A stretch of 64,000 nt of DNA, taken from the sequence record NC_029103.1, one strand, 5' to 3'. Each line of letters opens with the position of its first letter. Position 1 is the first letter of the stretch. Both the position numbers and the translations under genes were made by a program. Positions 1,033 to 54,872 of the stretch are shown in pieces. The notes below the pieces were generated by a model. That model made no database searches. It saw only the letters and a list, made by a program, of their open reading frames with translations, and was not told the origin of the DNA.

Positions 1033-1279
1033 TTTTATTCCCAATACAAAATTCGTGGGTCGAGATATAAATCTTTTCCTCAAACAGATGTTTTAGACAG
1101 TGCTGACTTCCTCCTCGTCCTTCCAAGGCAGAGTAGCTCACTCTCTTTGTTTTTCCATTTTTTACGTTATTTCTGCCTAACTGGTTGGGCATAACCGTCA
1201 ATATTCAACATCACCAGAGTAGAAAAAGCGAAACGAAAAGCTTATTAATTCGTCAAACAGATGTTTTAGATGAAGAAAA

Positions 1280-1648
1280 ATGGTGGTTTCAGTAGTCCTT
1301 CCAGGTTTAAGCGGTAGAAAGGCAAAAATAGCAGGGTCTATTGTCAAAGTAACGTTTGGATCAGCCGATTTCGACGTTCCAAAAATAGCAATAGCACTAC
1401 TAATCGTCGGTGTGATCATAGGTCTTTCAGGACTTATCCTATCCATCTTCGCCACCGCTACTGCAGGAGCAATCGCCAATCCACAACCAGGAACATTAGC
1501 ATACAACATGACACACCCATTAGTCGACGGTATGGTATCGTTCTTCAGCTTCTTCCCAACGTTGTATGTACTCTTAGGCGTAACAGGAATAGTATTAATC
1601 GCGGCAGGAATAATATCCATAATAATGGACAAATTCAAGACGGGTTAA
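1280..1648 (+). CDS. Probable hydrophobic major capsid protein of spindle-shaped virus type
   Basis: 122 aa; two long hydrophobic helices joined by a loop with an N-M-T sequon; strong BRE/TATA; first gene of the structural block; architecture fits described spindle-virus MCPs. Confidence 0.65.
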   Translation: MVVSVVLPGLSGRKAKIAGSIVKVTFGSADFDVPKIAIALLIVGVIIGLSGLILSIFATATAGAIANPQPGTLAYNMTHPLVDGMVSFFSFFPTLYVLLGVTGIVLIAAGIISIIMDKFKTG

Positions 1649-1748
1649 AACTCTAAAGTTAAACACGTATTTTTTCGTTTATCCATTATCTTCTTCCTCC
1701 TTCTTCTTCCTCCTCTTTTTAATACTTTTGTGCTGTTAAGATATTAAC

Positions 1749-2597
1749 ATGGGTCTAAAAACACCACCTTCAAACGTAAGTTTGACAAACACTATAACTA
1801 TAACCCCACCACCACACACTACTCAGCAACAGCTTAGTCCTTTTTCGTTATTCCAAATGTTGCTATCTCCACCATACGTCTACATTTTCATCGCCTTAGG
1901 TGTGCTAATTGTAGTATTCATTGTCGTACTCTTAGCGTTCAGGAAGTCATACGCAAAAGACCCGATAAGAAGTGGACTAATACGACAAATCCGTCGTTCT
2001 AAGAACAGTGACGTNGTAGTCGTGAACGTCGATATAGCTACCAGGTCTGCCCAGTTATATATCGGTGAGAAATTGTCNCCNTCNNTNTACACAATCCACG
2101 ACCCGGTTACAGGAGAGGAGCTGATAGTTCCGGTAACCTCTGAGTCTATGGTAGGGATGATACAGTACGGAAAGATACACAGACCGCTGTTAATCACAAT
2201 AAGGAAAAGTAATACAATGCCGTTTGCAATAAGGTTAGAGACGTTAGAAACATCAATACCTGTGTCTGAGTATGATACTGCAGAACCGGAACTGTTAGCA
2301 CAGTTGGCAAAGGTCAAAAAGATGATTACCGGTACTATAACGTTGTCTCCTACGACAAAGCTTGCTATTGCTGTTGACCCTAAGTTGTTATTGAGCAGAC
2401 GGCTATCGCAGGAATTGGAAATACTCAGTACAATACCAACGGCAGTTAAGGAGATGAACACAAACTTAGTGAAGTTATTGAAGTTGCAAAATGAGAGTAA
2501 GCGTGTACAAACGATGGGTAGAATAATGCTATACTTCGTTATCGGCATAATGGCGATGATGTTCCTTGCAGTGCTGTTCGGTTTACATATAATTTAA
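1749..2597 (+). CDS. Membrane protein with N- and C-terminal TM helices
   Basis: Hydrophobic stretches near residues 43-64 and at the C-terminus. Confidence 0.7.
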   Translation: MGLKTPPSNVSLTNTITITPPPHTTQQQLSPFSLFQMLLSPPYVYIFIALGVLIVVFIVVLLAFRKSYAKDPIRSGLIRQIRRSKNSDXVVVNVDIATRSAQLYIGEKLXXXXYTIHDPVTGEELIVPVTSESMVGMIQYGKIHRPLLITIRKSNTMPFAIRLETLETSIPVSEYDTAEPELLAQLAKVKKMITGTITLSPTTKLAIAVDPKLLLSRRLSQELEILSTIPTAVKEMNTNLVKLLKLQNESKRVQTMGRIMLYFVIGIMAMMFLAVLFGLHII

Positions 2598-2697
2598 CCT
2601 ATTTTTTTCCCCTTGTCTCTGCTTCTACAGTCCGTTAGTGTCGAGTAAGAAAATTTTTAATAGCTACGAGCAAACATATGTTTGAGGGATGTGAAAA

Positions 2698-4968
2698 ATG
2701 AGTAACAACAACGCTTCACTCGTCCCGTTAAACGAGTATCTCCTCCAGGTTTTTTCTAAGTTCCTACTATCTAAAGATTTTATATTTGACTACGATGTAT
2801 CAAAGAACTACGACGGATCATTAACGTTAGTTAATTATAAGCCTTTTGCAACGTTTAGCTATGATACCTCGCCAGGATATATGCCATTTATAATTCAAAT
2901 AAGTACTTCAGGGAAGAAACGCCACTGGAAGAAATACCCCTTTGCCCACATAATAGAATATGGTGAACGTGGTAAGGAAAAGTTCGTACCTTTAGATGAA
3001 GATAGTATTATCAATATAATCGAGGGATACGGTTTTACACTTTATTATAAGAATATTGATGTCAATGTAGTGCAAAGTGGTACAAATAAAGAATATAATT
3101 CAAAGGTAGTCTTAATCTATCCAAAAACTCCATTTGGTAAGGACACCTCGGAAGAAGATAAGAAAAAGATTGAGGCAAAAGTAAAATCAGTAATTCAAGC
3201 ATTACAGTCCGTTAGCCCTATGATCCGAGATAATTTCGATGCAATATATACGATTCAAACTTCCTCCAAGCAGGACTTATACCCGCACATTATACTCATC
3301 CCTAAGGGGCTTCTAAATGAAATTTCCGATTTCCTGATATCTCAGTATAAACAAACTTATGGAAATGTTACCTTACCACCTGCAGAATTTGTACCTAANG
3401 AAGATGTGAAGTCCCAAGAAATANAACAATTCNNNGANAAGNTNCCNNTCGANNTNNTTGGNAAAGCNGTCANAGGTACATACGGTTCTTATCCAGCAGT
3501 ACTTTTACCGAAAGGAGANTANTCNCANTACCTCACAGGCAACGAACGTGTAATCAACNTCGGNGAAAATGATGTAATAGTTTTCGTCAATCCTCAGACT
3601 CAGAGTANCCCACAACAAGTAGTTCCCACCCCTCAAGCTCAAGAACAACAAAATACAGCTTCTTTAGGTACTCCACAACAAAGTACTCCACAACAACAAA
3701 CCCCTACTCCTGAACAGCAGAACGTAGAACAGAATGCAGTAGAAAATAGAAGTAATAACCTTAATAACTTAGAAAAAGTACTCAATATCGAACTTTCACT
3801 CTACATTCCCGACTGGCTAAAACCATACCTAAACAAATACGGCATAAAGAAGGGAGAATCTTTAAGCAGAAAAGAGCGTGAGGAGTTCGCTGAAAAGATC
3901 TGGAACGAGTTACAAAAGAACTGGAAAAGAATCTTGGAATTATTAGACGTTAACAACGCCAGTATTCTTCCTACTACCGTCCTGGCGTTAGTTACCAAAT
4001 TCCCGTCTGAATACAAAGCTTCAAGTAAGAAAGTTACCTACCAGTCAGGGAATGTCATAGAAGAGACTACCAGAAGCGTTCTGTCTAATGTATTCGCAGA
4101 ACTCAGACAGAATTACCTCATACCGTTGTTAGACTCTTTTGCCCCAGACCAAGTGTTGGACTTAAGAGTTATCAGACCACTGAGTCCGGACGAGTTCGAG
4201 AAGTACCAACAAGAACTTAGTAACATGGTGGACTTCTACAGGGACGCATATATGATCTTCTCATTCACCAACTGGTTCAGAGACAAAGGTTACCAACAGA
4301 TAAAGGGTACCAGTAACCTTAAGGAACCAAATCCTGAGAAGCTCAAATATCTTCACGACCTTGTTGATGCCTTTACACATCTAAAGTCTATAGGTCTCTC
4401 TGTACCACTAATTGTAGACAAAAATAACACGCTGTTGGTCGGGTCGCTTAACGACCTATCACCAGAAGGGGAGTATACCGTACTAAAGATAAAGGACTTC
4501 GACCTCAACCAAACCAGTGAAGAGGAATTGAAGGAATTAAAATCACTTTTGGATTTTGCAAAGAAAGCCTTTGACGACCAGTACGGTGTGTTAATTGCCA
4601 AAACTACTATAAGTCCTGCGACTCTTGACATGCAAGTNTTNAAAACCATAGTGAAATTATTAGGTATATGTTCGGAAGAGGACGAAATCTGTTTGTATAA
4701 GGCGAGACAACAATTATCAGCTTTCCCCGAGTCGCTTAAGGACAAGTTTATAGATAACATCGCAAAGGAAACCGGAAGGAACCCGAAGTACAGGATACAA
4801 TTAATTAACTTGTTCGCAACACTGTTCGCACTTGTTAACTACTACGACTATCTGTCCNCNTTGCAGAGTGAAGAGATAAAGAACCAAGCTATTAGGAAAC
4901 TAAGGGAAGAGGAAGAGGAAAAAGCTAAGAAGATACTTGATATGGTGAAGGAAGGCTTAAGGCTCTGA
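2698..4968 (+). CDS. Large putative virion/morphogenesis protein with Q/P/T-rich linker
   Basis: 756-aa ORF with own promoter and SD (GAGG); central QQ..TP repeats. Confidence 0.7.
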   Translation: MSNNNASLVPLNEYLLQVFSKFLLSKDFIFDYDVSKNYDGSLTLVNYKPFATFSYDTSPGYMPFIIQISTSGKKRHWKKYPFAHIIEYGERGKEKFVPLDEDSIINIIEGYGFTLYYKNIDVNVVQSGTNKEYNSKVVLIYPKTPFGKDTSEEDKKKIEAKVKSVIQALQSVSPMIRDNFDAIYTIQTSSKQDLYPHIILIPKGLLNEISDFLISQYKQTYGNVTLPPAEFVPXEDVKSQEIXQFXXKXXXXXXXKXVXGTYGSYPAVLLPKGXXXXYLTGNERVINXXENDVIVFVNPQTQSXPQQVVPTPQAQEQQNTASLGTPQQSTPQQQTPTPEQQNVEQNAVENRSNNLNNLEKVLNIELSLYIPDWLKPYLNKYGIKKGESLSRKEREEFAEKIWNELQKNWKRILELLDVNNASILPTTVLALVTKFPSEYKASSKKVTYQSGNVIEETTRSVLSNVFAELRQNYLIPLLDSFAPDQVLDLRVIRPLSPDEFEKYQQELSNMVDFYRDAYMIFSFTNWFRDKGYQQIKGTSNLKEPNPEKLKYLHDLVDAFTHLKSIGLSVPLIVDKNNTLLVGSLNDLSPEGEYTVLKIKDFDLNQTSEEELKELKSLLDFAKKAFDDQYGVLIAKTTISPATLDMQXXKTIVKLLGICSEEDEICLYKARQQLSAFPESLKDKFIDNIAKETGRNPKYRIQLINLFATLFALVNYYDYLSXLQSEEIKNQAIRKLREEEEEKAKKILDMVKEGLRL

Positions 4969-5013
4969 TAATATTTTTAAACCATTACTCAAACATATGT
5001 TTTGGGGAAAAAG

Positions 5014-5415
5014 ATGAGCTGGTCAAATTGGGTTAGATCAGAGTTCAACGACTTACATCCAGAGAAGTACGCCAGAGACGCATTACACACGNTNNTATTA
5101 TTCGAAAGAGGGGAAATAGACTATCCTGAAGTAACACTGAAACTTGCAGGAGATGAGGCNTGGTCTGACGCCTTCCCACCTTTGAAGTAAAGCGTTACAC
5201 GACCTTGTACTCTTAAATAAAAGACGAAATAAAANAGAAACGGCATACCTGACGGCACGCCAGTACCTGACTGCGTTAAGGAGAGAAATAACTNAAGGAA
5301 GCTAAGAAACGCGGGATACTGCAAAACGTTAGAGGAATGGGCTAACGGNTACGAAGAAAGCTATGATTTTGAACNAGNTAGGGTGATTAAGAAAATGGGT
5401 TTTTTNCTGATCTAG
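5014..5415 (+). CDS. ATV p131/p145-like structural protein paralogue, frame broken in consensus
   Basis: GEIDYPEVTLKLAGDE matches the recalled ATV p131 core; reading continues KALHDLVLL.. across indels in an N-rich stretch. Confidence 0.6.
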
Positions 5416-5456
5416 CCACAGCGTTACGTTCATCTATTTCTTTCATAGTTATCGTT

Positions 5457-5711
5457 ATGTTTACGATAATATTCATTATAGTCTTCGGTCTCCTTGTGTA
5501 CTTTTTCAACGTCTTCAACACTGCACAGTCTCAAGTGTCTCAAACCGTTCATCCTACGAACAATATTTCACATGCAGTCTCCGCTGATATACATAATGCT
5601 TATACAGGTTTCGTCCCATACGTAAACTACTGGATGTACGGACTTGGAATAGGTATAGTTGTAGCTCTCATTTTTATTATAGCGACATCGATTAGGGAGG
5701 AAGGTGAATGA
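5457..5711 (+). CDS. Small two-TM protein, possible minor capsid protein
   Basis: Hydrophobic helix - loop with N-I-S sequon - hydrophobic helix. Confidence 0.6.
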   Translation: MFTIIFIIVFGLLVYFFNVFNTAQSQVSQTVHPTNNISHAVSADIHNAYTGFVPYVNYWMYGLGIGIVVALIFIIATSIREEGE

Positions 5712-6040
5712 TAATGGAACTCAAACCGTCCATAACTACAGCAATAATATTTTTTGCGTTGGCTACGATGTTAGTAGTCGTAGCTTTCCCGTTCTTTAAC
5801 CTCATAAGTAAACAAGTCCTCATTATCTCTAACACTTCTATAATCTATACAAATAGTACAAGAGATTCGGTACAAGTAGCTAATTCCACATTTACGGTGA
5901 ATCAACCGCAATATTATTCCCAACAGTTCAATGTCCTGTTGACGTTCTACAGTATTATTGCATACCCGTTTTTTGATATTACAGTGTTCATAATGATCGT
6001 TGGGCTTGCGTTCATCTACTGGTTTTTGCGAGAAAGATAG
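5708..6040 (+). CDS. Small two-TM protein, possible minor capsid protein
   Basis: Two hydrophobic helices; loop with NTS/NST/NST sequons; overlaps upstream stop. Confidence 0.6.
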   Translation: MIMELKPSITTAIIFFALATMLVVVAFPFFNLISKQVLIISNTSIIYTNSTRDSVQVANSTFTVNQPQYYSQQFNVLLTFYSIIAYPFFDITVFIMIVGLAFIYWFLRER

Positions 6041-6105
6041 TAGACCTAATGGGGAGCAACAAAAATCTCGTAATCTTTAAAACAGCTGTTTAAGAGATAT
6101 ATTTA

Positions 6106-9100
6106 ATGAGTGAGAATACTGTCCCACAACAGATAAACCAGCTACTCTCTCAGGGCAATTATCAGCAAGCATTACAGTTAGCACAAAAATACGGTTTAAC
6201 CGAAACAGCACAAGAAATCCAAGCGTTAATATACGTACAACAGGCGATTAACAACGCAGAGAACGGTAACCTCGACCAAGCATTAACTGATTTGCAGAAC
6301 GCACAGAAGTTAGACCCTGAAATAAACTTACAACCCTATTTCGCTTATCTCAACGTTATCCAGCTTTTCGATTCTGCGAATGAGGCACTGAAGAACGATG
6401 ACTACAACACCGCTTTAACTGACCTAAACCAAGCTCTACAAATAGCTCAACAGTACCCGAATGTGATCAACGTATCGCAAATACAACAACAGATACAGAC
6501 AGTGCAAGCTCTGCAACAGATAAACCAGTACATCAATAACGCTAACAGCGAACTGGAAAAAGCAAATTTCGCACAAGCTTACCAGTACCTTCAGCAAGCC
6601 TTACAACTGGCACAACAAAACAATATCAGCGACAAGAGACTCGAAAACGTAACAACAGCCGTTTCATTCTTAGCGAAGATACCTCCGTTCCCACAACCAC
6701 CGGAAGGAGAAATAACATTACAAGAGTTGCAACAGTACTTACAATCACTGAAATCATACTTCTCCACAGCATCACAGTACGCTACAGAAGCGTCACGGTA
6801 TTACAACGGTTTTTCAGTCCTTGCAAACGGTTACCAACAGTCAGAACAGGTCAGTTCTCAGCTCCTGGATGTTGTTAATCTGTTAGTCTATGCACAAGAT
6901 ATTGTAGAAGGAAAGAGAAGCGTACCAATGCCTGTACAGGATAAGAACCAAATATCTGAAACACAATACGCAATAAATCTTATACAACAAGCACAGGAAC
7001 AATTAGGCAACATTAACGCTAACGACACACCATTAGCAGGTTTAGCGAATTCGTTATCCGAAACTGCCCAGAAAATGTATACTATATACACTGCTTACTT
7101 ACAAGTACTTGAGGACATAGGAGAAGCACAACAAGAGGCAGTAAATGGGAACTATTCTCAAGCTGTTCAGTATCTTCAACAGGCGTCACAAATAGCACAA
7201 CAGAACGATATTACGATAAACTTAACTAACTATATTCAAGGTTTTACGGTTTTAGAGGGCTTACAACCATTACCTAAGCAACCTTCTAAACAAACGTTCC
7301 TTACTCTTTCTCAATATTTCAACAGTGTGTATCAGGTTCTTCAGCAGAACTACCAGGTTTTGGAAAAGGCTTCTAAATACCTTCAACTAAATTTACAGGC
7401 AGTCCAAGGTGACATCCAGGACGCTAAGAACATATCGCAAGCCATGCAGTTGTTAGCAGAAGCCCAGTTTTTACTTACACCATCACCAAACAATACATTA
7501 GTCACCAATGTTGTGAACAAAATTCGGCAAATTTTTGGCTCATCATCAAACAACACATCATCGTCCTCTAATATCATAAGCATGATTCTATCGAATAAGG
7601 ACACAATTCTAAACAATATTTCGCAAGCTCTGCGGTTACTGAGCGAAAGTGAGAGCTACGATATGCAAAGTACCGCTCAACAGCTGTTTGAAATGGCACA
7701 AAAATACCAAGCCCAAGTGCAGACTTACTTGGCAGGACTTGAGAAGACTCAGCAAACACTAGACGCCTTGAACACTGTAAACTCACTCGTAACTCAACAA
7801 CCAAATGCTAATTCCCCGTCAGCATACTTTCTGGCTTTACAAAACAACTATACCGAAGCTCTTAGAGTGTTAAAGAACGCAATGTCTTCCGCTATGCAAG
7901 CTAACTCTCTCTTCGAACAGATTAATGCTACACCACCGTTTGATATGAACCAATTTGAAAATGAGGATGTTGCGTTAGAGCAGTTCATTCAGCTCTTCGG
8001 GACTACTGCAAGTGCATATTCGTCAGTTGAAAGTTTATTAAACAATCAAGGTAACTTAAGTACTCCCTCAGATTACGCGAAGTATTACCAGAACGTAGCC
8101 TCCACGATACAGATGGCAATACAGCAAATAAATGCATTAAGGATTAGTGACAACGATGTTGTACAAGTAAGGCAACAAATAATTCAGTCGTTGCAAGAAA
8201 ACGAGACTAACTACCTGGCTTTATCGAACGCCTTTAACATAATAGCCCAAGCAGGGAATTCTCCACAGTCCTTAGCTCAAGCTTACAAGCAAGCATCACA
8301 GTACCTTTCTCAGTACCAAGCACTTCAGTCTGTTGCACAACAATTCGCAAATATGAGCGAATTCTACACTCTCATTGCACAGGCTAACGGACTCCTTCAA
8401 CAAGCGAGGAACACCTCCTCTCTTAGTACCGAAATTTCTCTAATGGAGCAGGCAAGGGAATATCTACAACAAACGCTCCAATACGTCCCGTCTAATTCAC
8501 AAGCATATCAAACCATTCAGAACGAGATATCGAATATTAACAAAGCAGTAAGCGTATTACAGAATGTACAACCCTTGCAACAACAACTAAAGAACGCGTT
8601 AAATAACGGGGACTGGTTATCTGCTTTATATTATTATAATGAATTATTGCAAACAACACAAGGTACTAACATAAACAACGTGATTACCGATGTATCACAA
8701 AATAACTACTTTAAAGCGATACAAGACGTTAACAACAACTCATCACTTCAACCGCAACAAAAACAGTTCTTGAACAGCCTTATAGCTACGGCAGGCATTA
8801 ACACGTATTACTTGCCTCTGATGCAGTCCTCACTACAACAGGCTCAGTCACAAGCGTCTTCTTTGCAATTGTCCAATACCTTCAATTTCGCCGAACAGAT
8901 GCAACCAGTAGCCAATGACTTGCAGAACGCACTTCAGTATGCTCAGGATGCTGAGAACTTAGCACAATATGTTTCTCCTCAGCTACAACAGAACTTATCC
9001 CAAGTCGTGTCAAAGATCCAGGAGAAGTATAACGCAATTGAGGAACAGATACATAGTGCCGAAAGTAATTGGCTACTTAACGGGTTTGAAGGTTTTGTTA

Positions 9101-12100
9101 ACACTTTTAACACCGCTATAAACGACCTGATGAACGATATTAACAACTTTATTTATTCACATTTAGGTAAGAATACTTTCACTGAAATCTTGGCAGGGAT
9201 CGTTGACGGTGCCATATTTGTAGCAATCTCCGCTATTCCTTATGTCGGGCAAGCCTTCGATGTATTGTCGTTGATATCTTTTGTTGGTAGTATAGCATTT
9301 GATTTGTTAGCTGGTTCTGCGTCATATAACGAGACGGTTAATTCCTTCAAACAGATGTTTACAAACCCAACGTCAATATCAACGATAGTGACACTGATAA
9401 CTGGTGTACTTGCAAGAAAGTTGATAGAACCAGACGAGGTAGCCACTACTGACATAACTAAGACTACGGACAGCGTGAAAACAGTCCTGTCAAAAATTGA
9501 GGATTCTATAAAGGACAAGGTCGACATATCAAAAATAAGTGGTAAGGTAACTGATACTGTCAAAACAGACGTAATCAAGTCCCCAGACTTCTCAAAAATT
9601 AATGAACCTGGTGAAAGAGGTAAAGATAGATAAGCTAGACATTAAGGCACTGAAGAAATTAAGTAACAAGATGGTAAAGATTGAAGGGGACGCATANNAA
9701 TTCGTTGATACTGATATATCCGACACAAAGATTACGATAACAACTTCATACATTTTAAAGGACGTAAAACTGAAGGCGTTTGACGGAGCAAAGAATATTG
9801 TAGTAAAGTTAAGCAAAGACTTTGATAAGGGTATAGAAGTTAACGTTACACCGAAGCTTATTGACGATGTTGATAATGCAGTTGCNACATTTGAAAANGG
9901 NNAANTCAAGNTCACAACGNTNANNGAAGAGACCATAAAGAACGCACTNTCTTCAAACGATTTAGNCACAGCTCTGGACACTATCAAAACTAANNTGNCN
10001 GNGACTGTCGNCAAACAACTGCTTGATGAACTCAAAACGNAAGACGGCAACATAGTGAAAATATCCCCAGACGAGGGCATNGCNTATNTCGGTGGTAAAT
10101 TCTACGATGTGTTCTACAAGGACGGCACACNAGNGAAGATGGANGNGATANATGACGNTNTNGCATTAGNTAAGCTAGAAAAATTCGNAGAGGACACTGT
10201 AGGTAACTTCGTAACGCTTAACAAGAACTTGATAGAACAACTGTTGAAGAACAACGAAAACTTGCGGACTATCGAATACCAATTAACAAATAAGCTTACA
10301 GGCAACGTTGTAAGGAATGAGTACCTGAGAATTAAGGACTTATTAGGGAATGAGACAAAGTTCACGTCCAAAACTGAGATAAACCCTAACGAAATAAAAT
10401 CAATTAATGAAATTGAAGGAAAGAATCTACCTGAAATATCTCAAAGTTCTGGGTATTTAACACCACAGGAAGTCGATAATCTACTCAGCTTTGATAACAA
10501 GTTTTCGCAGATATTCAGGCAACTAATTGATGAACANCCNGAGGTCAAAGACTTACTTGAGAAGTTAGCGTCGAAAGGAAAATTGCCAGCTAGTTTNANA
10601 CNACTTGAAGATATAGCTGATAAGATAGAATCATTTTACGANGCTCTGGACAANGAAGTGAAAGATATAGAGAGCAAGTTAAGCAGTAACCCACTATTCG
10701 ACGGTGTAAAATGTCTCGAGTGTTGTTAAGTCTATTGCGGAAAAANTAGTAAAGAATAAACCCAGATGACGTACTGGACGGCGANGTACCTAAGATNTCA
10801 CTATCAGATGTCCTAGACCGCTTAAGCACAGCAGATAGGGCTAAAGTAGTGTTGAATTACCTGAAGACAGACCCTAAGGTATACGAACGAGGTAATGCAA
10901 AAAACTGAGCAATTTCTCTAGCTGATACTAGAGATTACATACTAGCCCAAGCATACGACCAGATTGCTATAGCAATGAAGAATAATAAACCGATAACTGC
11001 CGATGGACTGGAAAACGTAGTTTGCAGATATAGACGACGCTATAGAAAATATAGAAAATATAAAGTCCTACAGAATCACAAACACCTGTTTCAACAACAA
11101 ACACCACTTCTAACACTACCACCTCAACAACAACAACTACAGAGGGTACAGCTTCGAACAGCTCTTTCAAACGGCACATCAACAGTCCTACAATCATCAG
11201 AACAACAGCAAGGAGGGGTATTGACGAGAGTNTCTCTAAANNCAATGGTAGAAAACGCCTTATCGAGCCTATTCCCAGATTTCGAAAAACTNCCGTCAAC
11301 TGTGAAAACGTTATTTGAGAACATTGTCCTCAGGGAGTTAGGCGAAAAAGGAGAACTAACAACAGAAGACATAACGAAAGCATTAGAGGACGCAAAAGCA
11401 GAGTATCAAGCGATATTGGACAGCATCAAGAAGATGGTTAATGACGTTAAAACTGAAGTGAAGACTAGNAGNGAAGAAGAAAACATTGTAAATAACCTGG
11501 ACACTAGTATAGNCGANCTGGAGAAAAAAGTAAAGTTTGATGTGAAAAAGCTGTCGCAATTCTTGTCTATAGCTAGTTTCGTAGCAGACATGTTTAACGT
11601 CGCAACAGCAGTTGAACTTATAACACAACTGAATGCACTCACTCCCCAACAGTTACAGCACACGATTATCCTTACCCAACCTCAGCTGGAGACAATAACT
11701 AGTATTGCCCCAACAATTAAGGAACTAATCGTAAAGTTGGACAAAGGCGTGAAACTAAAAGACTTACAAGGTATAGCAGTGCAAATTAGGGACGCTTTGC
11801 AGAAGATGGGGATTAATATCGACGTCGAACAGTTGCTAAGGATAATTAGTGTGTTACAAACTATAACTAAGGAGTTCAATTTACAAATTAGCGAGATAGC
11901 GTCTCTTATCGCTATAAACGATGTTAACGGTTTAACTGTTATTCCTATACCCGTCATATCAGGTATTACGTCACTGATTACGTCTATCCAGACTGGAAAC
12001 ACTACCACAATAACTGGAAACACTACTTCAGTCGGCAGTGAAGAAATCCCAGAAACAACGCTATCTGTTGGCACCATACCACTGCAAGGAGAAGCAATAC

Positions 12101-12258
12101 AACAGCTACAACAATTGTTAACACCACCAAACGCTACACCACCTAATATTAATAATGAAGAAGGAGGGTCTCAAGGAGGAGGGGTTGCTGTACCTCCATC
12201 GTATTCAACGTCACAAACAACATCATATAAGTCGAAACAACAATATTTAATAATATGA
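6106..12258 (+). CDS. Giant (~2050 aa) TPR-like/coiled-coil Gln-rich virion protein; ORF-track pieces 6106..9633, 9602..10729 and 10975..12258 are probably one gene
   Basis: Helical A/Q/L repeats, a central hydrophobic hairpin, coding-like sequence across the breaks, which lie in or beside N-rich consensus; no promoter seen between pieces. Confidence 0.6.
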
Positions 12259-12482
12259 AAGTGACGGTAGTTAGCTAGAGCCAGTTCGAATTAACGTAAT
12301 CTTTTTTCCTTACTTCGTACTTTTTTCCGTATATAGCATTTCGAACTTTTGCCTCTTTTTCTTCCCCTTCACCTGGTTTCAACAGTGCGAAATTAAAACA
12401 GCAGTGGAAGCCCGTCCTTCGGCTCCAGTTTCCCCTCAAACAGATGTTTATATTTTTTTAGCCTGCTTGAAAATCTTATGAT

Positions 12483-15400
12483 ATGAACAGCAGGAAGAAA
12501 GTACTGGTTGTTACCCTATTCCTGTTATTCTTAATTGAGATAACACCAACAATTGTCACTAATTCGCAAACACCACCTTCAGCTTCAGCATATGTTGGGA
12601 GCATTAGTGTGTCTTCAAACCCGTTCATCTTAAATACGACGTTACCAGCGATAAACCAACTAGGGTCTAATGTAAGGTTCTTCCAATACCCTAACTTGAC
12701 GGGACAGCTGTACGCATACGAACAACAACTACCGCAAACGATACCCACTGTGGATAGTGTCGAGTCTACGTCCTGGAAGGTATTACCATATTGGGAAAAT
12801 GGTGAACTGGTGATGAACGATACTGCAAATATTATTAATCAGTACATTGCATGGAGATATTCGCCAGTAAGCAACACCATTAATATTACCATCCACGTTA
12901 CATCATTCCCAAATAGTAGTAATACTGGTAATGCTGGCTTTGGTGTCTACTCACCTAACATAGGAGACCAATCAAATGATAATAATAATGGTTTCTATGC
13001 GTTAATAGTGGACTTCCACGGCAACACGATATGGTTCCATCCCCCAACATCTGGTTATGAAAAGCTTTACACTTCTTTACCTCAACCTAACCCCGACTTC
13101 CCATTTACCTTCAGTGCGATACTTACTGAAAACTCTGCGGGAAACATCACTGTGTCTACTGTGTACATCAACTCAACGGCTTACTCCGTAAATATAAACA
13201 CTCCTTTCCCGTGGAGCGAGATAGGTTACATTGGAATAAGACCAGGTGCTGGTAACTTATACTACGTCTCTTACTTCGGCGTCTCTCCAGCACCTTACGG
13301 CGGTGTCGAACAATTTGTGAACGACGTGGAGTCAACGTCATGGAAAGTATTACCATATTGGGAAAATGGTGAACTGGTGATAAACAGTACTGGAGCAAGT
13401 TATGGTGGTCAGTATATTGCCTGGAAATATTCACCAATATCAAACACAATCAACGTCACCATCCACGTGACGTCGTTCCCATCCAGAGGCGGTCAACCTG
13501 GTATTGTTGTCTACTCACCTAACATAGGAGACCAAACAACTGATGGTAATAGTGGCTTTTACGTGCTACTGGTGGACTTCTATGACAACACGATATGGTT
13601 CCACTCTCCAACATCTGGTTTCACACAGATTTACACTTCTCTGCCTCAGCCTAACCCCAACTACCCATTTACCTTCAGCGTCATCTTGACGGAGAACAGT
13701 ACTGGTTACATTACTGTGTCTACTGTGTACATCAACTCAACGGCTTACTCCGTAAATATAAACACTCCTTTCCCGTGGAGCCAGATAGGTTACGTGGGGA
13801 TAAGAGGCGATTTCGGAAGTGGTGGTAATAGCTTATTCTACGTCTCCTACTTCGGTATCACACAGCTGTTAGACGCATACTCTCTTGTTACTAACCTTGC
13901 CACGAACACACCTTACACTGGCACAGTTTACGTAGCAGTCTTCCCATACCCTATCAGCTACGACGTTTACGTATCACCAGCATCAGTTGTAAACTCTCAG
14001 TCCCCTCTCCCCATGTTCTCACCTTCATTTACTTCAACCACCACGCCCTACCCCGTGGTTTCGACTAACGCGAACTTCGGCGTCATAAATATATGGACTA
14101 CTTCGGGATCCGTTACGGCGAGTAGCGGTACAGTCATCCCTTCAATAGGTGCGTGGACTTCCGTCTCCCTCTCTACGAATACCGTCCCGAACTTCCTCGT
14201 TAACGGGACAGTAAAGAGCGGTAGTGTAAGCGGTAATACAATCACACTAAGCGGGTTGACTGGTACTTCAACTGTAGTATTTCCAGATAACTTCATACCT
14301 TCTTCAACGGCTGGAGTGACGACATACAACGCTACGTTTAACGAGATAAAGACTACGGCTTCTTCCCTAACTTTCACAGTCAACACACAAATGTTTGAAA
14401 GCGGTGTACCAGTGATAGGGGCAACTCTCGGTGAGAACTGGTATTACTACGGCTTCTACTCTACTGCGGGTAGTTACAACGTACCGTTATTCCTAACTAC
14501 GTTAGCTGTAGGGAACCAGATTTATGCGAATATTCCAATGGTTGAAAGTACAGGTTGGAGGGTCTACCCTTATTGGGAAAATGGTCAACTAGTGATAAAC
14601 AGTACTGGAGCAAGTACCTGGGGTCAGTATATAGCTTGGAGATATTCCCCAGTAAGTAACGTGATCAACATAACGATCCACGTGACGTCGTTCCCAGAAC
14701 AGTCTGGTGCCGCCAATACTGGTATTATCATAATGTCACCTAACATAGGAAACCAATTACGCGATGCTAGTTCTGGTATATACTGGTTATTAGTTGACTT
14801 CTACAGTGGCTACATATGGTTCATTTTTCCAGTACGTGGTATGATACAGCTTTACTCTTCACTGCCTCAACCCAACCCCAATTATCCCTTTACCTTCAGC
14901 GTCATTTTGACGGAGAATTCAGCGGGCAACGTCACAATACAGAGCGTATACATTAACGGCACGGCTTACACAGTGAACGTCAATACTCCGTTCCCGTGGA
15001 GCGAGATAGGTTATGTGGGAATAAGAGGTTTCACTGGTAGTAATAATGAACTTATTCTACGTNTCNTANTTCGNCGTCAACTCAATTCCNTTAGTCTCTT
15101 CCTCAGGCGTCACATCCTTTAACTTCTATTCGCCGTTCTCTCTCTCCTACACTATCACAAANACTTCGATCACAGTCCAAAACACACAGCTGGTTGANGG
15201 NGAAAANTACCTNACAATTCCAGGCACTAACGGTATCATAGGGGCGTCTTTCNCNTTTTATAATGTAACGTATAACGTCCCAGTCCTTGCAGTGTCTTCA
15301 TCTCCTNTATCCGTGACATATAACNCACAAACACTAACTNTNACAGTAATTTCNNCATCTCAGTCATTCCTAGTTTCGCCTTTCGGAGTACCNGAACAGA

Positions 15401-16164: not shown

Positions 16165-16282
16165 TTATGCCAGTCTGTCTAACTAGTTGGGTAGAACCTT
16201 CCATATTCAACGTACCAAATTCGTCGAAATGCATCCGAAAAGTTTTTTAACCACCAGCTCAAACATATGTTTGAGAGTAAAA

Positions 16283-16630
16283 ATGGCAGACAAATACTTC
16301 CCAAGAAAGGGAGATGTTGTAGGTGGTGCAAGAGACCTCTTAAAGGCAATCCTAGACGGGAAAATAACAAAATACCCTGACATAACGCTGAAAATCGCTG
16401 GAATCGAAGCTAACGCTACCAGAGACGGATATCCACAAGTAAAAGCAATCCTTCATAAAGTTGTAGAAGCGATAAGAGAAGCAGTAGAACAAGCTAGCTT
16501 AAAGAGGAGGGGTATGGGGTTCGAGGAAGTCGAAATCCCACCTGAAGTCCAACAGCAATACTTACCTGCAGTGCAGGAAGCATACAACTTGCTATCATCC
16601 ATGAACGCGGGACAAATGGTTAACGTTTAA
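16283..16630 (+). CDS. ATV p131/p145-family structural protein
   Basis: KGDVVGGARDLL..YPDITLKIAGIEANA matches the recalled p131 N-terminus; start moved from 16187 to the ATG after the TATA and palindrome. Confidence 0.8.
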   Translation: MADKYFPRKGDVVGGARDLLKAILDGKITKYPDITLKIAGIEANATRDGYPQVKAILHKVVEAIREAVEQASLKRRGMGFEEVEIPPEVQQQYLPAVQEAYNLLSSMNAGQMVNV

Positions 16631-16675
16631 GCCAAACCTTCCTTTTTTAAATTCTAATTTTCCAAAGTATATATT

Positions 16676-17173: not shown

Positions 17174-18662
17174 ACGAAGTTGCTGTATGTCCCGTTGCTG
17201 TTATATACGTTACCCGGATAATACTGACCTAAAACAGCTGGTAGAGCCGGTATAGTCCCAGAAGTTTTGACTAACTTACCTAGTTTAGACGCACTCTGGC
17301 TTTGAGGTGCTAAACCATTACTAACAAGAGTATTATATATTTGTAGTAGTTGGGATAATTGTTGTGTGTTTACTTCTTCCTGCTTATGATTACTTATTTT
17401 GTAGTACGCGTCTCTGATATCGCTAAGTAAACGCTCAACAGCAGTAGATAACGGAGTTCCATTGGGTATGTCGTACATTTGGTACAATTGAGTTACAGCA
17501 GTAACTAATGGGATCATGCTAGGAGGTATTTCTGCTATTTCCGATTGTAGTGAGCTTAAGTCACCTGCCTTTATCTGGGCTAACACTTGACTCTGAGATA
17601 TTATTGAAGACAACACAGATGTTTGGGGGCATGTAGTTGAAGTTGAGCTGGTCGGTGTAGTTGTTGTAGTACTAGCTGAGGATGAGGCAGAACTACTGCT
17701 CTGTGAGCTGGATGATGGTGATGGAGTAGAACTAGATGGAGTAGATGGAGGAGAAGAACTGGTTGATGATGTTGAGGAAGACGAAGGAGTAGAGCTTTGT
17801 GAGCTAGTATTTTGACTAGCTGGCGTAGATGTTTGAGTATTAGTTGATGGCGATGGAGTAGAACTCTGTGAGCTGGATGATGGAGATGATGAGGCAGAAC
17901 TACTGCTCTGTGAGCTGGATGATGGTGATGGAGTAGAACTCTGACTCTGTGAACTGGTAGATGAAGATATTCCTTGTAATATCTGCTGTGGTGAGGTAGG
18001 TTCGTCCCCTAAGCCGGCTTGATTAAAGACTATTGTCTGGACGGAAGATTGCAAAAGCACTTGTGCAACAGTCATATAGAAAGCTGGTATTTCTATCTCA
18101 ACATCATCAGAACCCGGTGGTATTATAGATGTAATATCAACGTATTGGTTCGGTGCTAATGTATACGATGCTAATACGTTTCCAGTATTAGGATCAAGAA
18201 CTTTGAAAACGAGCGTGCTTGGATACAGGTTTAGCAGATACACTTCTCCCGTTGAAGATGAAGGAGTAGATGACGATGTACTAGAGGATGAGGCAGAACT
18301 ACTGCTCTGTGAGCTGGATGATGGCGATGGAGTAGAACTAGACTGTGTCGGCGTACTGGTTGATGTAGAACTCTGTGAACCACCTTGTAATATCTGCTGT
18401 GGCGAGGTAGGTTGATCACCTAAGCCGGTTTGACTAAAGTATATACGTTTGAACGGAAGATTGTAAAAGTACCTTGTGCAACAGTCATATTGAAACTGGG
18501 TATTACTATCTCAACATCAGTGGACTGTGGTGATATGTCGGATGAAATATCAACATACTGGTTTGGTGCTAGTGTATATGTGTATGTGTTCCCTGTAGTA
18601 GGATCAACTACTTGGAAAGTGAGTGTTTGCGGATACAGGTTTAGCAGATACACTTCTCCCAT
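17170..18662 (-). CDS. Protein with a duplicated ~90-aa N-terminal domain and Ser/Thr-rich linkers; pieces 18420..18662 and 17170..18243 probably one gene
   Basis: GEVYLLNLYP..LAPNQYVDI..QQILQG occurs twice; aligning the copies shows two extra bases near 18440-18475 causing the frameshift. Confidence 0.7.
17681..18339. repeat. Three ~52-bp repeats encoding STPSPSSSSQSSSSASS (17681, 17888, 18287)
   Basis: GATGAGGCAGAACTACTGCTCTGTGAGCTGGATGATGG(T/C)GATGGAGTAGAACT. Confidence 0.9.
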
Positions 18663-18839
18663 TTTTACTCACTAAAACATATGTTTGAAATGAATAAAAG
18701 CCTTTTCTGGTCTCATGGGAGGTCAAAATTTCTTTTATATTCAGATTTGGATTGAACTTTTTTCTAATACATGTTTCAGAAATATTTTCAAAATTTTCTA
18801 AAAATCTGAAGAACATCTTGAAGGCATCGAAAATTTCCC

Positions 18840-19571
18840 CTAAAATAGCCTTTGTTGAAACACTAATCCTTCTTTAAGCAGTCTGTTTTTAGTAATTTCG
18901 CAATATTTAGCATTGATCTCTACTCCTATTGCTCTTCTATTAAACGAGCTTGTTGCTACTAATGTAGTCCCGCTACCTACGAATGGATCTAGAATTAAAT
19001 CATTTTCATAGCTGAATAATTTTNTACACCTTTTAGGTAATTCCAATGGGAACGGAGCTGGGTGATTTACTTTCCTTCTATTTTCTCCATTAAAAGTCCA
19101 AAGTCCGTTAGTCCATTCTATGAATTCATTTCGTGTTATATCTGACTTTCCCGAGTGGATCTTCTTCCATCTCCCTTTATAAAGTATGACTATTACTTCT
19201 ACTGGTGCAATAACATAAGGGGCTGAAGCACTCATGAATGAACCCCATGCGGTTCTTCTTGAAATATTACCCTCGTTCCATATTATTGTTGAAAAGTATT
19301 TCCAACCAACCTCTTTTGCAATATGTGTTATATCAACGTAAACACTTTGGAACCCTTCTTCTTGTCTACCCTTGCTTTTATCCAGGGGAACATTCAAGCA
19401 CATTCTTCCATCTTCCTTTACATCTTCAAGTGCTTTCTCTAACCATTTTCTTGTGAATTCGAGATATTTGTCATAAGGAATATTATCGTCGTAATTCTCA
19501 TAATTAATATCAACATTATATGGCGGGGAGGTGATTATCAGATCGGCTTTTTCATCTAACTTAACTTCCAA
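18840..19571 (-). CDS. Orphan beta-class N4-cytosine/N6-adenine DNA methyltransferase
   Basis: Motif IV TSPPY N-terminal, HPAPFP, motif I DPFVGSGTT C-terminal; real start probably ~50 nt upstream in an N-broken segment. Confidence 0.9.
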   Translation of the reverse strand: MEVKLDEKADLIITSPPYNVDINYENYDDNIPYDKYLEFTRKWLEKALEDVKEDGRMCLNVPLDKSKGRQEEGFQSVYVDITHIAKEVGWKYFSTIIWNEGNISRRTAWGSFMSASAPYVIAPVEVIVILYKGRWKKIHSGKSDITRNEFIEWTNGLWTFNGENRRKVNHPAPFPLELPKRCXKLFSYENDLILDPFVGSGTTLVATSSFNRRAIGVEINAKYCEITKNRLLKEGLVFQQRLF

Positions 19572-19731
19572 ATAATCATCATTATAGATTTTTNNTTTAT
19601 TATCTGGAGTTAGAATAGTAGAGTGTCACCTAATATCCCATCAAATAATTGAGTAATCCTAAGTTTAAAAGAATCGCTCTTCTCTAATGGACGATTCAAG
19701 ACTCCTTTGCGAATTGTCACTTGTTCAGATG

Positions 19732-22022
19732 TTAAAACCTCTTGAATATAAACCCTAGTATTATGGCACCGATAGCGAAAGGTAGTACTATATAGTCAGC
19801 AAATAGTAGACCTATGGAGAGTGTAGCGAAACTAAGGAACAGTGTAGAAGACCAAAGTTGAGAAGAATAACGATAAGAAGCTACCGCTATTGCCAGAAAA
19901 CTATAGTATGTTATAATNCCTATTAGTTGGTTGTTCGTTGTATGCGTATTAGTTATAAATGAAGCTCCACTACTACCGTTATACTTTGTAACAGTCACGT
20001 TAGTAACATTCAATGACGCTACTTGGACTGGTTTTACCGGTAACGGTGAGGTGGAAATTGTTACCGTCCTAGTGGATTCCGATACTNTAACGACTACTTG
20101 TAGGTTCGTTGGTAAGTTTGTCGGGTAGTAGTTACTGGATATGATAAGTTGTGATTCTATGCTCCCATATTGCATAATAAGGTTATACCCGGTGAAGCCT
20201 ACTAGTGTTAGGGAAGACGATGAGTTTGGTAGTTTAGTTTGGTAGATNGCATTATTATTATTGACTATTGCTTCTCCCGGGGCTGTCGTTAGGCTAAGTA
20301 CGGAAGACTGTAATGGTGAAGGCAAACCTGTTGTAATTGATACGATACCCGTAGTTTCGTAATACAGACCAGAAGACAGTGTTATACCGATGCTTGATAC
20401 AGATAGCGGTATTGTGCCATTATAATTAATATAAGGAACTATACCGGTTGACGCAACCGCATTTGGCATAGGTGTTATGAATGTGTAAAAAGACCCTGGG
20501 TAAGTAATAGAAACCTATGAGATAGAACGTATTGCCTATGTCTGCATAACCTACCGCAACATCAGCTGGAAAACTTCGGGCTATNTATCAGCTTTGTNAC
20601 AGCTGTTTGAGAGTTNTAAACNTATACNCCTGTCGTATTTTACTATCAGACCGGCTTTGTGACAAAAAGTCNAGNAAANCCNACNAGCATGTTGTAATTG
20701 ACTTGTGTGTTTGTTAGCGATGGTTGGACTGATATGCCTACCACATTCCGTCCATAAACTTTCAGATCAACTAAATTCAAGCCTCCTACCGTGTTTANCG
20801 TATTCCCGCTCGCGGTAACAGTATATGTGGAGCCGTTTGCATACTTAACCGAAATTACACTACCTACCGGTATATCGTCAAAGTAAATGTAACTGGAAGA
20901 CGAGTTATAGGGTAAAATATACATGGACACATGGTTTAAGTCAAGCTTCAAGTCGCTTGCTTGCACCGGTAAAGAGTACCANTTNCTNTCGTTNTACACT
21001 AGGATATTAGAACCGTTAAGTAACGTCGGGTTAAAGAAGTATACCGGGTTTTCTAACAATACGGAATTAGTACCGTATGATGCACTTTGGGATACCGCAA
21101 AAGTACCGTTAAACGTAACGGATGAGGGGGCTACAGTCTGCGGTGCTAAATATTCAGTAGAAGGGTACTGTAAAGACACTGGTGACCCGAACACCATCCC
21201 GTACATAGATGACTGTGGCAAGGTCACTTGGGCAATTTCTTCGTTNGGCATGCCTGCCACNTNNGCGTTATACGTNAATTGAGAGCCTGAAATNGNGAAC
21301 TGTGAGTTTTNNACATAATCATCGGAAGCCATAACCCANGTNGTAGANCCGAAAGGAAACGCCGTGTATGAGGGGATTGTNTGTNAGNNGGAATANGAGA
21401 AAAGGCTTANNGTAACTATGCTACCTGNAGGNACTGAGCCGGAATATANAGATCCAGATGTCGTTTCAACACCTGAAGGTGNNGTTANAACNGCTGNAGA
21501 NTGNAAGTTGTAAAGTATAACTGCAGATGTNTAACGNAACGCNGTNGTNGTAAAAGTCACAAGGCTNTTTTGCCCGTTNANNACNAGNGAACCACCAAGN
21601 ANNGAAACNNCTGATACGTTGAAGATTGACGTGTTNAGATAATAGAACTGAGTGTAAAAACTAAACACNCCNGTNGTTACGGCAGTAGCNTGAGTANTTC
21701 CACCATAAACGAAATAATAGGTTTGCGATGAAGGAGCAGGCTCGTACCATACCAGCAACGGTGGCGTTTCTGAGAACAGATACGAATATTCGTAGTAACC
21801 CAGGGAGTTTGATACGTAATAATTTTGACCGAACACTTGGGTCTGTTGCGGGAGCGGAGAAATGTAAATTAGACCTTGTGAAATGTTCGCGTTTACGTTA
21901 ACTGAGATAGGTACTTCTTCTTGGATAAGGCTAGCTTTTGTTGTTAACAGGAAAAACGGTAAGAGGAAGAAAAATAAATATAGCAAGATCAGGAATATGG
22001 TCTTTCTTCTGATAACTCTCAT
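19732..22022 (-). CDS. Secreted beta-rich glycoprotein with C-terminal TM helices; pieces 20646..22022 and 19732..20469 probably one gene
   Basis: N-terminal signal peptide, many sequons, C-terminal hydrophobic helices; break in N-rich region. Confidence 0.6.
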
Positions 22023-22100
22023 GATTAAAACATATGTTTTAAGGATTTAAATTTCTGACCTCCTCCCCGTCCTGAAGGGCGAGGCTTGTCGTTCATTTTG

Positions 22101-22568
22101 TCAATAGTTTTCCAAGACGTAAGGAGATGCTGTGTACTGTAGATTATTGGTGACCTGAACGGACTGGGAACTGACTATTTTTGGCAGAACTTGTGCAAGC
22201 TGTACGTATACTTGCAACGCCTTTACTATCTCTGGTTCAACATTATACATTGACGCGATAGAATTTAGTACGTCCGGTTGGATTTGTTCTGCGATTTGAC
22301 TAGCCTTTGTCACTAGTGCCACAGGGTTATATTGAGTTTGCTGGACTAGGCTTGGTATTTTCTTGTACTGAACTCCAAAGTAATTTGCAACTTTTTGTGG
22401 AGAAACAGGAGTAAACGGCTCGTTAAGGTACTGTGTAGAGATTTGATTAAGATTGTAATATTGCGGGAGTTGATTAATTGTATATATTAAGTTTAGTATT
22501 TTCGCTATAGCTTGAGCATATTCTTCAAAGGAGAGGGGCTTCTTCCCTTTGTTGCTTTCACTCATCAA
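22101..22568 (-). CDS. Hypothetical Gln-rich protein
   Basis: 155-aa ORF with palindrome/TATA promoter. Confidence 0.7.
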   Translation of the reverse strand: MMSESNKGKKPLSFEEYAQAIAKILNLIYTINQLPQYYNLNQISTQYLNEPFTPVSPQKVANYFGVQYKKIPSLVQQTQYNPVALVTKASQIAEQIQPDVLNSIASMYNVEPEIVKALQVYVQLAQVLPKIVSSQSVQVTNNLQYTASPYVLENY

Positions 22569-22643
22569 ATATATCTCTCAAACAGCTGTTTAAAAAATTA
22601 TTAGCCGACTCCTCCCCTAGAAAGGGAAAAGGAGAAAGAACTC

Positions 22644-32892: not shown

Positions 32893-32988
32893 AAATCCTC
32901 ACTTAAAAAAATTCTGAGACGATATATATAAGCCTTTCTTAAACAGCTGTTTGAGGTTTATATACCGGTTTTTAGAGTATAAAATAGT

Positions 32989-36127: not shown

Positions 36128-36217
36128 GAAGGAATTCCTCTTAAACAGATGTTTGAAAGTTGACTTCCTCCCCCCGGGTCATTCGACTTTTTAAAGCTAT
36201 CACGCGAAGAATCTAAC

Positions 36218-54822: not shown

Positions 54823-54872
54823 TTNATTTTTTCTTTTTTGTTTTCTCTCTAAAACAGCTGTTTGAGGTATTT

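Follow-up and report, generated by a model that had tools for sequence, protein, structure and literature searches.

Why should a single short palindrome stand downstream of TATA at some promoters of an archaeal virus and upstream of it at others? The question is raised by a stretch of 64,000 nucleotides (the window), which proved to be record positions 1–64000 of Sulfolobus monocaudavirus SMV3 (KP282677 / NC_029103, 64,323 bp, circular; Megablast of the first 25 kb, 100% identity), a metagenome-derived, Bicaudaviridae-like tailed spindle virus of Sulfolobales. A first reading of the letters (the original prediction) had described a 12-base palindrome, AAACANNTGTTT, here called the box, and had proposed that it lies between TATA and ATG at structural genes and upstream of the TFB recognition element (BRE) at accessory genes, so that one factor could activate early genes while repressing late ones. 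We find that the box is a genuine, strongly selected cis-element. It is most probably the operator of one dimeric regulator of about 25 promoters, and this regulator is probably encoded by the virus. If position sets the sign of regulation, the early and late roles would be the reverse of those first suggested.

A 12-base palindrome in the SMV3 genome

The box is present at all 17 coordinates cited in the original prediction. The window holds 30 exact copies versus 0.31 expected (dinucleotide shuffles, none of which contained more than 2), and a 31st lies just past its end, at record position 64045, in front of gp87. Although only 14.4% of the window is non-coding (85.6% is coding by the RefSeq annotation, which was used for SMV3 genes throughout), 25 of the 30 boxes are intergenic (binomial p = 6e-17). 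An unbiased scan for palindromes with 4–5 nt arms and 0–6 nt spacers returned the box as the most enriched palindrome of SMV3 and also of SMV1 and SMV4.

A symmetrised alignment of the sites extends the conserved unit to CTC-AAACA[G/T][C/A]TGTTT-GAG (in oligonucleotide form, CTCAAACAGCTGTTTGAG). The centre is restricted: half-sites end in G or T, giving CAGCTG, CATATG or the mixed CAGATG/CATCTG (GC 12, TA 7, GA/TC 8). Such a centre, together with the CTC/GAG flanks, fits a symmetric dimer. An RNA element was considered and rejected, as the scan of the whole window gave no tRNA and no Rfam family and the dyad could form a hairpin of only 5–7 bp, unlikely to be stable at 75–80 °C. The gaps between boxes are irregular (173 to 9271 bp), on which ground a regularly spaced or architectural array was rejected. 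Searches of the literature outside the original SMV1–4 and ATV genome papers, for the box or for a described motif of SMV or ATV promoters, gave nothing relevant to it.

Position of the box relative to TATA, BRE and start codon

TATA-like octamers were located with a rough position weight matrix (PWM), and the predicted transcription start was taken as TATA start + 31 on the basis that Sulfolobus TATA boxes are centred at −26/−27. Relative to these octamers, 18 of the 25 intergenic boxes fall within TATA+5..+17 or TATA−22..−9, whereas 5000 random placements in the same intergenic regions averaged 7.4 and never exceeded 16 (p<=2e-4). By the same rough PWM, ten promoters have the box at TATA+5..+17 and nine at TATA−9..−22. 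The operator-like palindrome thus does occupy both sides of the core promoter. The dichotomy first described is real, but it missed a third class of sites approximately 100–111 nt upstream of the gene.

Class A comprises ten promoters in the window, mostly of virion genes. As the original prediction had it, all ten boxes lie between TATA and the start codon or overlap TATA. They stop 5–16 nt short of the annotated start codon, a TATA-like octamer begins 5–17 nt upstream of the box, and the boxes occupy about −26 to −3 of the predicted start. In subclass A1 the box starts 12–17 nt after the TATA start and ends 5–14 nt before ATG. On the plus strand, A1 boxes precede gp03 (1255..1266, CAGATG, 13 nt before the ATG, conserved in SMV1/SMV1a), gp05 (2672..2683, CATATG, at TATA+17 and 14 nt before the ATG, identical in SMV1 and SMV4 with different flanks), gp06 (4991..5002, CATATG, 11 nt) and gp16 (16261..16272, CATATG, 10 nt); on the minus strand they precede gp19 (18675..18686, CATATG, 12 nt) and gp22 (22028..22039, CATATG, 5 nt). 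The gp87 site outside the window is also of this type. In subclass A2 a TATA of the form TTTTT/AAA (TTTTTAAA) shares its last three bases, AAA, with the box, which in all four cases is CAGCTG: gp09 (6080..6091, plus strand, the TATA-like CTTTAAAA overlapping the 5′ arm, 14 nt before the ATG), gp23 (22580..22591, minus strand, TATA fused to the box, 14 nt), gp61 (48964..48975, minus strand, 16 nt) and gp65 (50832..50843, minus strand, 11 nt).

Both gp06 (5014–5190) and gp16 (16283–16630) are annotated 'major head protein' and are homologues of the ATV ORF145/ORF131 family of virion proteins (39–47% identity), of which ORF145 is the RNA-polymerase inhibitor RIP. According to the SMV1a paper (PMC12199143), the actual major capsid protein (MCP) is the gp03 homologue, and SMV3 gp03 is the counterpart of this SMV1a protein, gp03.

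Class B boxes lie upstream of TATA. In B1 the box starts 9–22 nt before the TATA start and ends 0–10 nt before TATA (gp02, gp14, gp35/36, gp53, gp54, gp55, gp74 and gp80). The gp02 box (1082..1093, minus strand) stands 10 nt upstream of a strong BRE/TATA, its start at TATA−22, and a single box (32941..32952) serves both divergent genes gp35 (minus) and gp36 (plus), with a TATA 4–8 nt from either end. On the plus strand, the gp53 box (42561..42572) adjoins the upstream side of BRE (AAAAG) and TATA, that of gp54 (43114..43125) is at the BRE position, 2 nt before TATA, that of gp55 (43865..43876) is likewise at the BRE position, and that of gp80 (58535..58546) is at the BRE position and overlaps the TATA TTTAAATA. 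Between the divergent genes gp74 (minus) and gp75 (plus), the box at 56137..56148 overlaps the gp74 TATA, whereas its class with respect to gp75 is ambiguous; next to it in this intergenic region, at 56160–56172, stands a stretch of some ten G/C (cccccccccc/gggggggggg). The gp14 box (12438..12449, plus strand), whose 3′ TTT belongs to the TATA TTTATATT, serves this gene if it starts at ATG 12483. To judge from the SMV1 orthologue gp10, whose start likewise lies 32–33 nt past the box, gp14 probably does start there and not at 12609; the tiny minus-strand open reading frames (ORFs) gp12 and gp13, which overlie the gp14 promoter and start, are doubtful as genes.

In B2 the box is 34–50 nt upstream of TATA. 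It is found at 36143..36154, 34–45 nt upstream of the TATAs of the divergent genes gp42/gp43 (both with weak BREs), and at 44755..44766 (plus strand), from which the best TATA of gp56, a gene whose SMV1 orthologue is gp38, lies 50 nt downstream. Seven of these upstream sites had been said to abut BRE/TATA. Six are indeed 10–22 nt upstream of the TATA start, but at 44755 the TATA is 50 nt away, and at 43114, 43865 and 58535 the box stands in the BRE position and not upstream of a BRE. Overall, in five of nine B1 promoters the box takes the place of BRE or shares a T-run with TATA, and four leave exact space for a good BRE between box and TATA. The genes gp54 and gp55 (43166–44754) are tandem paralogues (32% identity over 270 aa), each with its own box and TATA module, and their two boxes are therefore not independent observations.

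Class C boxes lie 70–82 nt upstream of TATA and 100–111 nt before ATG: 38727..38738 (minus strand, 109 nt upstream of gp46) and, on the plus strand, 53589..53600 (100 nt upstream of gp69), 54346..54357 (111 nt upstream of gp71) and 54852..54863 (108 nt before ATG 54972, which is probably where gp72 really starts). The annotated TTG start of gp72 (54873) is very probably wrong, since it is followed by a complete promoter (palindrome, TATA 54933, GAGGG) and then by the in-frame ATG 54972. Boxes with one mismatch occur in class C position before gp47, gp48 and gp63, and in class B position between gp30 and gp31.

The class C promoters carry a second palindrome, CTAAC-N-GTTAG, fused to GCAGAAAA and TTTATATA. 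It recurs at 53640..53672, 54407–54439 and 54906–54941 on the plus strand and at 38649–38680, 39156–39187, 39542–39573, 49409–49439 and 49776–49806 on the minus strand, a promoter type common to gp46, gp47, gp48, gp62, gp63, gp69, gp71 and gp72. At these promoters AAACANNTGTTT is located some 60 nt farther upstream, 12–20 nt past the T-run that ends the preceding gene; the gp46 box, for example, lies just past such a T-run. Six of the genes, gp46, gp47, gp48, gp62, gp69 and gp71, figure in a published list of predicted anti-defence (early) genes of SMV3 that share a regulatory sequence (PMC11065993), and all six carry the CTAAC-N-GTTAG promoter; gp63 and gp72 carry it beyond the part of the list compared. 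That study (Bhoobalan-Chitty et al. 2024) resembles our analysis in that a conserved sequence surrounds a strong BRE/TATA of several single SMV3 genes and inverted repeats are proposed as repressor sites (with Aca8; PMC11065993). It differs in that the box also occurs at about 20 promoters outside the gene list. The element shared at the BRE of the six genes is CTAAC-N-GTTAG and not the box, which is 70–82 nt upstream of TATA there. We therefore reject the identity of the box with the published motif as far as the BRE-proximal element is concerned; the comparison is with the gene list and not with the published logos, with which the box may partly overlap.

Core-promoter quality differs between the classes. 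A purine-rich, GAAAAG-type BRE is strong in six of six A1 promoters, which suggests that these are intrinsically strong, and weak in 8 of 12 class B promoters (p = 0.013). This contrast is an independent hint of two regulatory signs. The sequence of the box centre also follows geometry. CATATG had been described as concentrated at structural genes, and the counts are correct, but the core tracks the A1 arrangement (box 12–17 nt after the TATA start; six of seven versus 2 of 24 elsewhere, p = 2.5e-4) rather than location in the first 22.6 kb (p = 0.2). The central dinucleotide of A1 boxes would fall ~8–9 nt short of the predicted start, where the DNA melts, and a TA step there may simply favour opening of very strong promoters.

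The phasing also bears on whether the box is primarily transcriptional at all. It could instead be a target of methylation or restriction, a roadblock or insulator that separates closely packed genes, or a site for packaging or for organising the genome. Both CAGCTG and CATATG belong to the classical type II sites, and SMV3 encodes an N4/N6 methyltransferase, gp20; class C boxes follow T-run terminators, as noted, and several class B boxes begin 0–6 nt from the upstream stop codon. Moreover, intragenic copies are themselves enriched (5 versus ~0.15 expected in SMV3: 9349..9360 in gp09, and 11080, 23670, 33925 and 40349, all exact matches). However, SMV1, SMV1a and SMV4 keep 27–30 boxes without a gp20 homologue, and the conserved unit is 12–18 bp long with a degenerate centre, not a 6-bp site, on which grounds a restriction-modification target was rejected. 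A roadblock standing between a TATA and its gene would stop transcription of that very gene, and strict phasing on TATA and ATG is unexpected for packaging or architectural sites, as is the irregular spacing. We consider a function of this kind improbable.

The uneven quality of the SMV3 record, a metagenome assembly, is visible elsewhere in the window. It contains 332 ambiguous bases (e.g. 2015–2087, 3399–3608, 9697–10144 and 54804–54826), which introduce X residues into gp29, gp42 and gp74. SMV3 gp09, gp10 and gp11 (6106–12258) correspond to a single 6-kb gene of SMV1, gp09, and are split in an N-rich stretch, possibly through assembly errors; SMV1 gp09 contains four intragenic boxes. The thymidylate synthase gene (45994–46753) is annotated as two overlapping ORFs, gp58 and gp59, both parts of which are matched by ATSV and STSV2, and the split is probably a frameshift or sequencing error.

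Conservation in related viruses and expression timing

The relatives of SMV3 in the phage collection are SMV1, SMV1a, SMV4 and SMV2 and, farther off, ATSV, ATV/ATV2, STSV2 and YNP1. Exact boxes number 28 in SMV1, 27 in SMV1a and 30 in SMV4. At orthologous promoters of SMV3, SMV1 and SMV4 the box is identical and the flanks have diverged, and its class is kept (A: gp05, gp06, gp09, gp16, gp19, gp22, gp23 and gp61; B: gp30/31, gp42, gp56 and gp74). In SMV2 only three exact boxes are left; substitutions are scattered over the orthologous sites, which is what a loss of selection would lead one to expect. ATV and ATV2 lack the 12-mer and contain 44 and at least 38 copies, respectively, of the variant ACAGCTGT (~0.7 expected), of which roughly every second one is intragenic. 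In ATSV a longer variant, TGAAAA-CACANNTGTG-TTTTCA, occurs 18 times. Genome scans of STSV2 and YNP1 gave neither box nor variant. ATSV and YNP1 share another enriched palindrome, TTGC-N6-GCAA (11 and 8 copies versus ~0.5 expected), which may be an operator that belongs to a different regulator.

IMG/VR, scanned for AAACAGCTGTTTGAG, gave 118 loci, 34 of them box-rich and all with a GC content of 0.35–0.41. The distance from 165 non-redundant boxes in these metagenomic relatives to the next ORF-opening ATG is trimodal, with peaks at 10–14 nt (43), 45–49 nt (22) and 105–109 nt (12). Since orthologous copies are not independent, the scan demonstrates the generality of the arrangement and does not add formal significance. 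The proposal of one palindromic operator on both sides of the core promoter is thereby well borne out: the geometry is sharp, it is kept in SMV1 and SMV4 and it recurs in the metagenomic copies.

Published transcriptomes allow box position to be compared with expression. In SMV1a, followed by RNA-seq from 0.5 to 48 h post infection (hpi), gp03 (MCP) is the highest transcript at every time point; gp03, gp11, gp23 and gp24 are classed as 'full-time/late', gp05, gp06 and gp09 as 'early', and the structural module as the 'early region' (PMC12199143). In SMV1, gp01, gp05 and gp36 are early and gp04 and gp38 middle/late (PMC10681719). When boxes are mapped onto these labels, every labelled class A gene of SMV1/SMV1a (gp03, gp05, gp06, gp09 and gp11) is early or already high at the first sampling, and the labelled class B genes are middle/late (gp04 and gp38) or full-time/late (gp24).

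The temporal half of the original prediction, in which upstream boxes activate early accessory genes and downstream boxes repress late structural genes, is not supported by these data. It draws on the positional dichotomy and on the enrichment of virion genes in class A, but in SMV1a, whose corresponding promoters carry the same boxes, early expression is the mark of the structural module and the MCP transcript leads from 0.5 hpi. The labelled upstream-box genes come up middle/late or full-time/late; none of the eight labelled genes behaves as predicted. The SMV3 promoters that are predicted to be immediate-early, moreover, carry the box ~100 nt upstream and a different palindrome at BRE. We regard this version as highly improbable.

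A second possibility is that the box is the site of a host factor or a core-promoter element, a Sulfolobales protein exploited by the virus that might, for example, make class A promoters strong upon entry. This would suit the finding that no promoters of SMV1a are stronger or earlier than those of class A and the very constant distance from class A box to ATG (10–14 nt), and also the lack of any viral protein that fits the box distribution cleanly. Against it, all these viruses infect Sulfolobales, yet the box differs among SMV1/3/4, ATV and ATSV, has decayed in SMV2 and is missing from STSV2 and YNP1. A dimeric regulator would match a perfect dyad, an asymmetric initiation complex would not, and the same box occurs on both sides of TATA and 100 nt away. 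We consider a host factor rather unlikely.

A putative position-dependent switch and its candidate factors

It is established that repressors in archaea work on TATA or downstream of it, and activators directly upstream of BRE. Position-dependent dual regulation by the box is plausible. The explanation that we put forward, tentatively and well short of calling it probable, is that a virus-encoded dimer binds all the boxes and that box position sets the sign: class A promoters would be damped and class B promoters raised later, giving an early-to-middle/late switch. Class A promoters combine a GAAAAG-type BRE with a good TATA, and a dimer bound between TATA and the predicted start would block recruitment of TFB/RNA polymerase or promoter opening. 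These promoters would fire at once upon infection and then be damped while the factor accumulates. At class B promoters, where the box abuts or replaces an often weak BRE, the same protein could help to recruit TBP/TFB, and the genes would rise later. The distant class C box at anti-defence-type promoters would represent a third use. Given a factor that is missing at entry and builds up in the course of infection, the position rule predicts early expression from downstream-box promoters and later expression from upstream-box promoters. The order seen in SMV1a therefore gives the switch, if the rule holds, a polarity opposite to that first suggested, with the virion/structural module early or constitutive.

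The lineage-specific variants of the box and its decay in SMV2 argue for a co-evolving viral factor. A wider version of the switch is more speculative, and we rate it as unlikely though worth stating: one viral dimer would read a co-evolved ACA-NN-TGT family (AAACANNTGTTT in SMV1/3/4, ACAGCTGT in ATV/ATV2, TGAAAA-CACANNTGTG-TTTTCA in ATSV) as a master temporal switch in large tailed spindle viruses, damping early virion promoters, switching on weak-BRE middle/late ones and using a third site ~100 nt upstream at anti-defence promoters. Were this true, the decay of the boxes in SMV2 would be accounted for by loss of the factor.

Much of the same geometry could be produced by a global repressor of a single sign, which would block RNA polymerase at class A and compete with TBP/TFB at class B, and so control shut-down, copy number or the chronic state through ~20 promoters. 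Most characterised archaeal-virus regulators are repressors. The overlap of the box with BRE or the TATA T-run in five of nine B1 promoters and the AAA that A2 TATAs share with it would both suit occlusion. SMV1a sets up a stable chronic state (PMC12199143). On the other hand, four B1 promoters leave exact room for a good BRE, and occlusion is impossible at B2 and C boxes, 34–82 nt upstream of TATA. The 45–49 nt peak is sharp, which suggests that contact with the initiation complex is stereospecific. In addition, BREs tend to be weak where the box lies upstream, and expression of the labelled class B genes goes up later and not down. A repressor of this kind thus seems unlikely, although it is the alternative to which we give most weight.

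None of the candidates for the factor is convincing. The first, gp67 (52336..52605, plus strand, 89 aa), is a predicted winged helix (AlphaFold2 pLDDT 89, topology H-S-H-H-S-S) whose Foldseek matches are all winged-helix domains, if weak ones (E about 0.04–0.2), and it has homologues in SMV1, SMV1a (gp43), SMV4, SMV2, ATV and ATV2. A box left unassigned to any promoter (52673..52684) lies 68 nt past the gp67 stop and 288 nt before gp68, and a box just 3′ of the gp67-family gene is found in SMV3, SMV1 (44075), ATV and ATV2 (L007 7458 and 7536), a conserved linkage of gene and box. The second, gp86 (63702..64000 in the window, to record position 64028, plus strand), is a tandem ribbon-helix-helix (RHH) protein (Pfam RHH_1, 33 bits) with 74% identity to its homologue in SMV1, 72% in SMV4, 60% in SMV2 and 30% in ATSV; the SMV1a homologue is gp50. 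The third and weak candidate is gp63 (49565..49741, minus strand), an aCcr1 homologue with a Pfam RHH_1 domain. Its merit is its phyletic pattern, the best fit of all: among DNA-binding genes, the gp63-type RHH gene alone occurs in SMV1/3/4, ATV and ATV2 and is lacking in SMV2 and STSV2. In SMV1 it appears to be unannotated, as a reading frame on the minus strand (41820–41960, 51% identity, GTG start) opposite annotated gp40. The only genes present in SMV1/3/4 and absent from SMV2 are this one, gp01 (acidic) and gp73, described as a Phd-like anti-toxin (PMC11065993).

Three further SMV3 proteins, gp47 (C2H2 finger), gp48 (SSV1 D-63-like) and gp62 (coiled coil), are not conserved in SMV1 or SMV4. 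Searches of PDB sequences with gp67, gp61, gp81 and gp23 gave nothing useful, and Pfam and PHROG gave no function for most of the small conserved proteins.

Several observations weigh against a position-dependent switch. A pure promoter operator leaves the enriched intragenic copies, in SMV3 as in ATV/ATV2, unexplained, and the five class B boxes that overlap BRE/TATA have a geometry that would equally suit a repressor. The transcription starts are predicted and not mapped. The agreement between box class and temporal label comprises only eight labelled orthologous genes and is not significant by itself (p = 0.2), and the labels come from SMV1 and SMV1a, not from SMV3. The two MCP-type genes, gp03 and gp11, have a class A box and yet remain the leading transcripts from beginning to end, so that any class A repression must be partial or promoter-specific. 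As to the factor, gp67 is no more than a generic winged helix whose 'recognition' helix is rather hydrophobic, both gp67 and gp86 have homologues in SMV2 although its boxes have decayed, and gp63 has been shown by others to bind an unrelated AGTATTA-type box of host cdvA promoters (PMC9976878, PMC9976892). Among the nine genomes, none of the three matches the box distribution without exception.

Regulators whose sign depends on operator position are known from cellular archaea. TrmBL1/Tgr, with the Thermococcales glycolytic motif (TGM), and SurR likewise use a palindromic operator, upstream of BRE/TATA or downstream of TATA, at tens of promoters. They differ in being known proteins of cellular Thermococcales, with the motif TATCAC-N5-GTGATA; the SMV3 box belongs to a viral genome in Sulfolobales, has a third, distant position and is known here from sequence alone. 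SSV1 F55 and SIRV1 SvtR are virus-encoded dimeric RHH regulators that bind at, or close to, start sites in several promoters of the virus and govern the temporal programme. These, however, are of other viruses with other sites (direct repeats for F55), and have few targets compared with ~25 promoters and three phased positions.

A further comparison is with aCcr1 and its aCcr1-box (ccr-2 box), where a small RHH protein, with homologues in SMV3 (gp63) and ATV, represses by occlusion from a short palindrome between TATA and start codon (PMC9976878, PMC9976892). That site differs in being AGTATTA / AGTA-N-TAC at host cell-division promoters such as cdvA. Identity of the box with it (motif AGTATTA / A(T/G)GTA(A/T)TAC) was rejected because both the sequence and the order of the half-sites are different, ACA-NN-TGT versus GTA-N-TAC. 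The eukaryotic E-box (CANNTG, bound by bHLH proteins) shares the CAGCTG, CATATG or CAGATG core, a dyad through NN and flanks that modulate specificity, but the unit conserved in SMV3 is longer (AAACA..TGTTT plus CTC/GAG). A Pfam scan of 40 SMV3 proteins gave no bHLH or bZIP domain, and the likeness is probably only formal.

We know of no regulator–operator pair described for Bicaudaviridae-like spindle viruses, and to our knowledge the transcription programmes of archaeal viruses are known for a handful of systems. The pattern of regulation in SMV1a was called 'complicated' by the authors of the RNA-seq study (PMC12199143). A 12-bp box at ~25 promoters, in three phased positions, offers a concrete and mutable handle on such a programme, and it is conserved in SMV1a, a cultivable virus that has been experimentally evolved in S. 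islandicus REY15A. It would offer a compact test of how the sign of regulation depends on where the operator stands when the basal machinery is the archaeal, eukaryote-like one, and could yield regulated promoters for Sulfolobus genetics.

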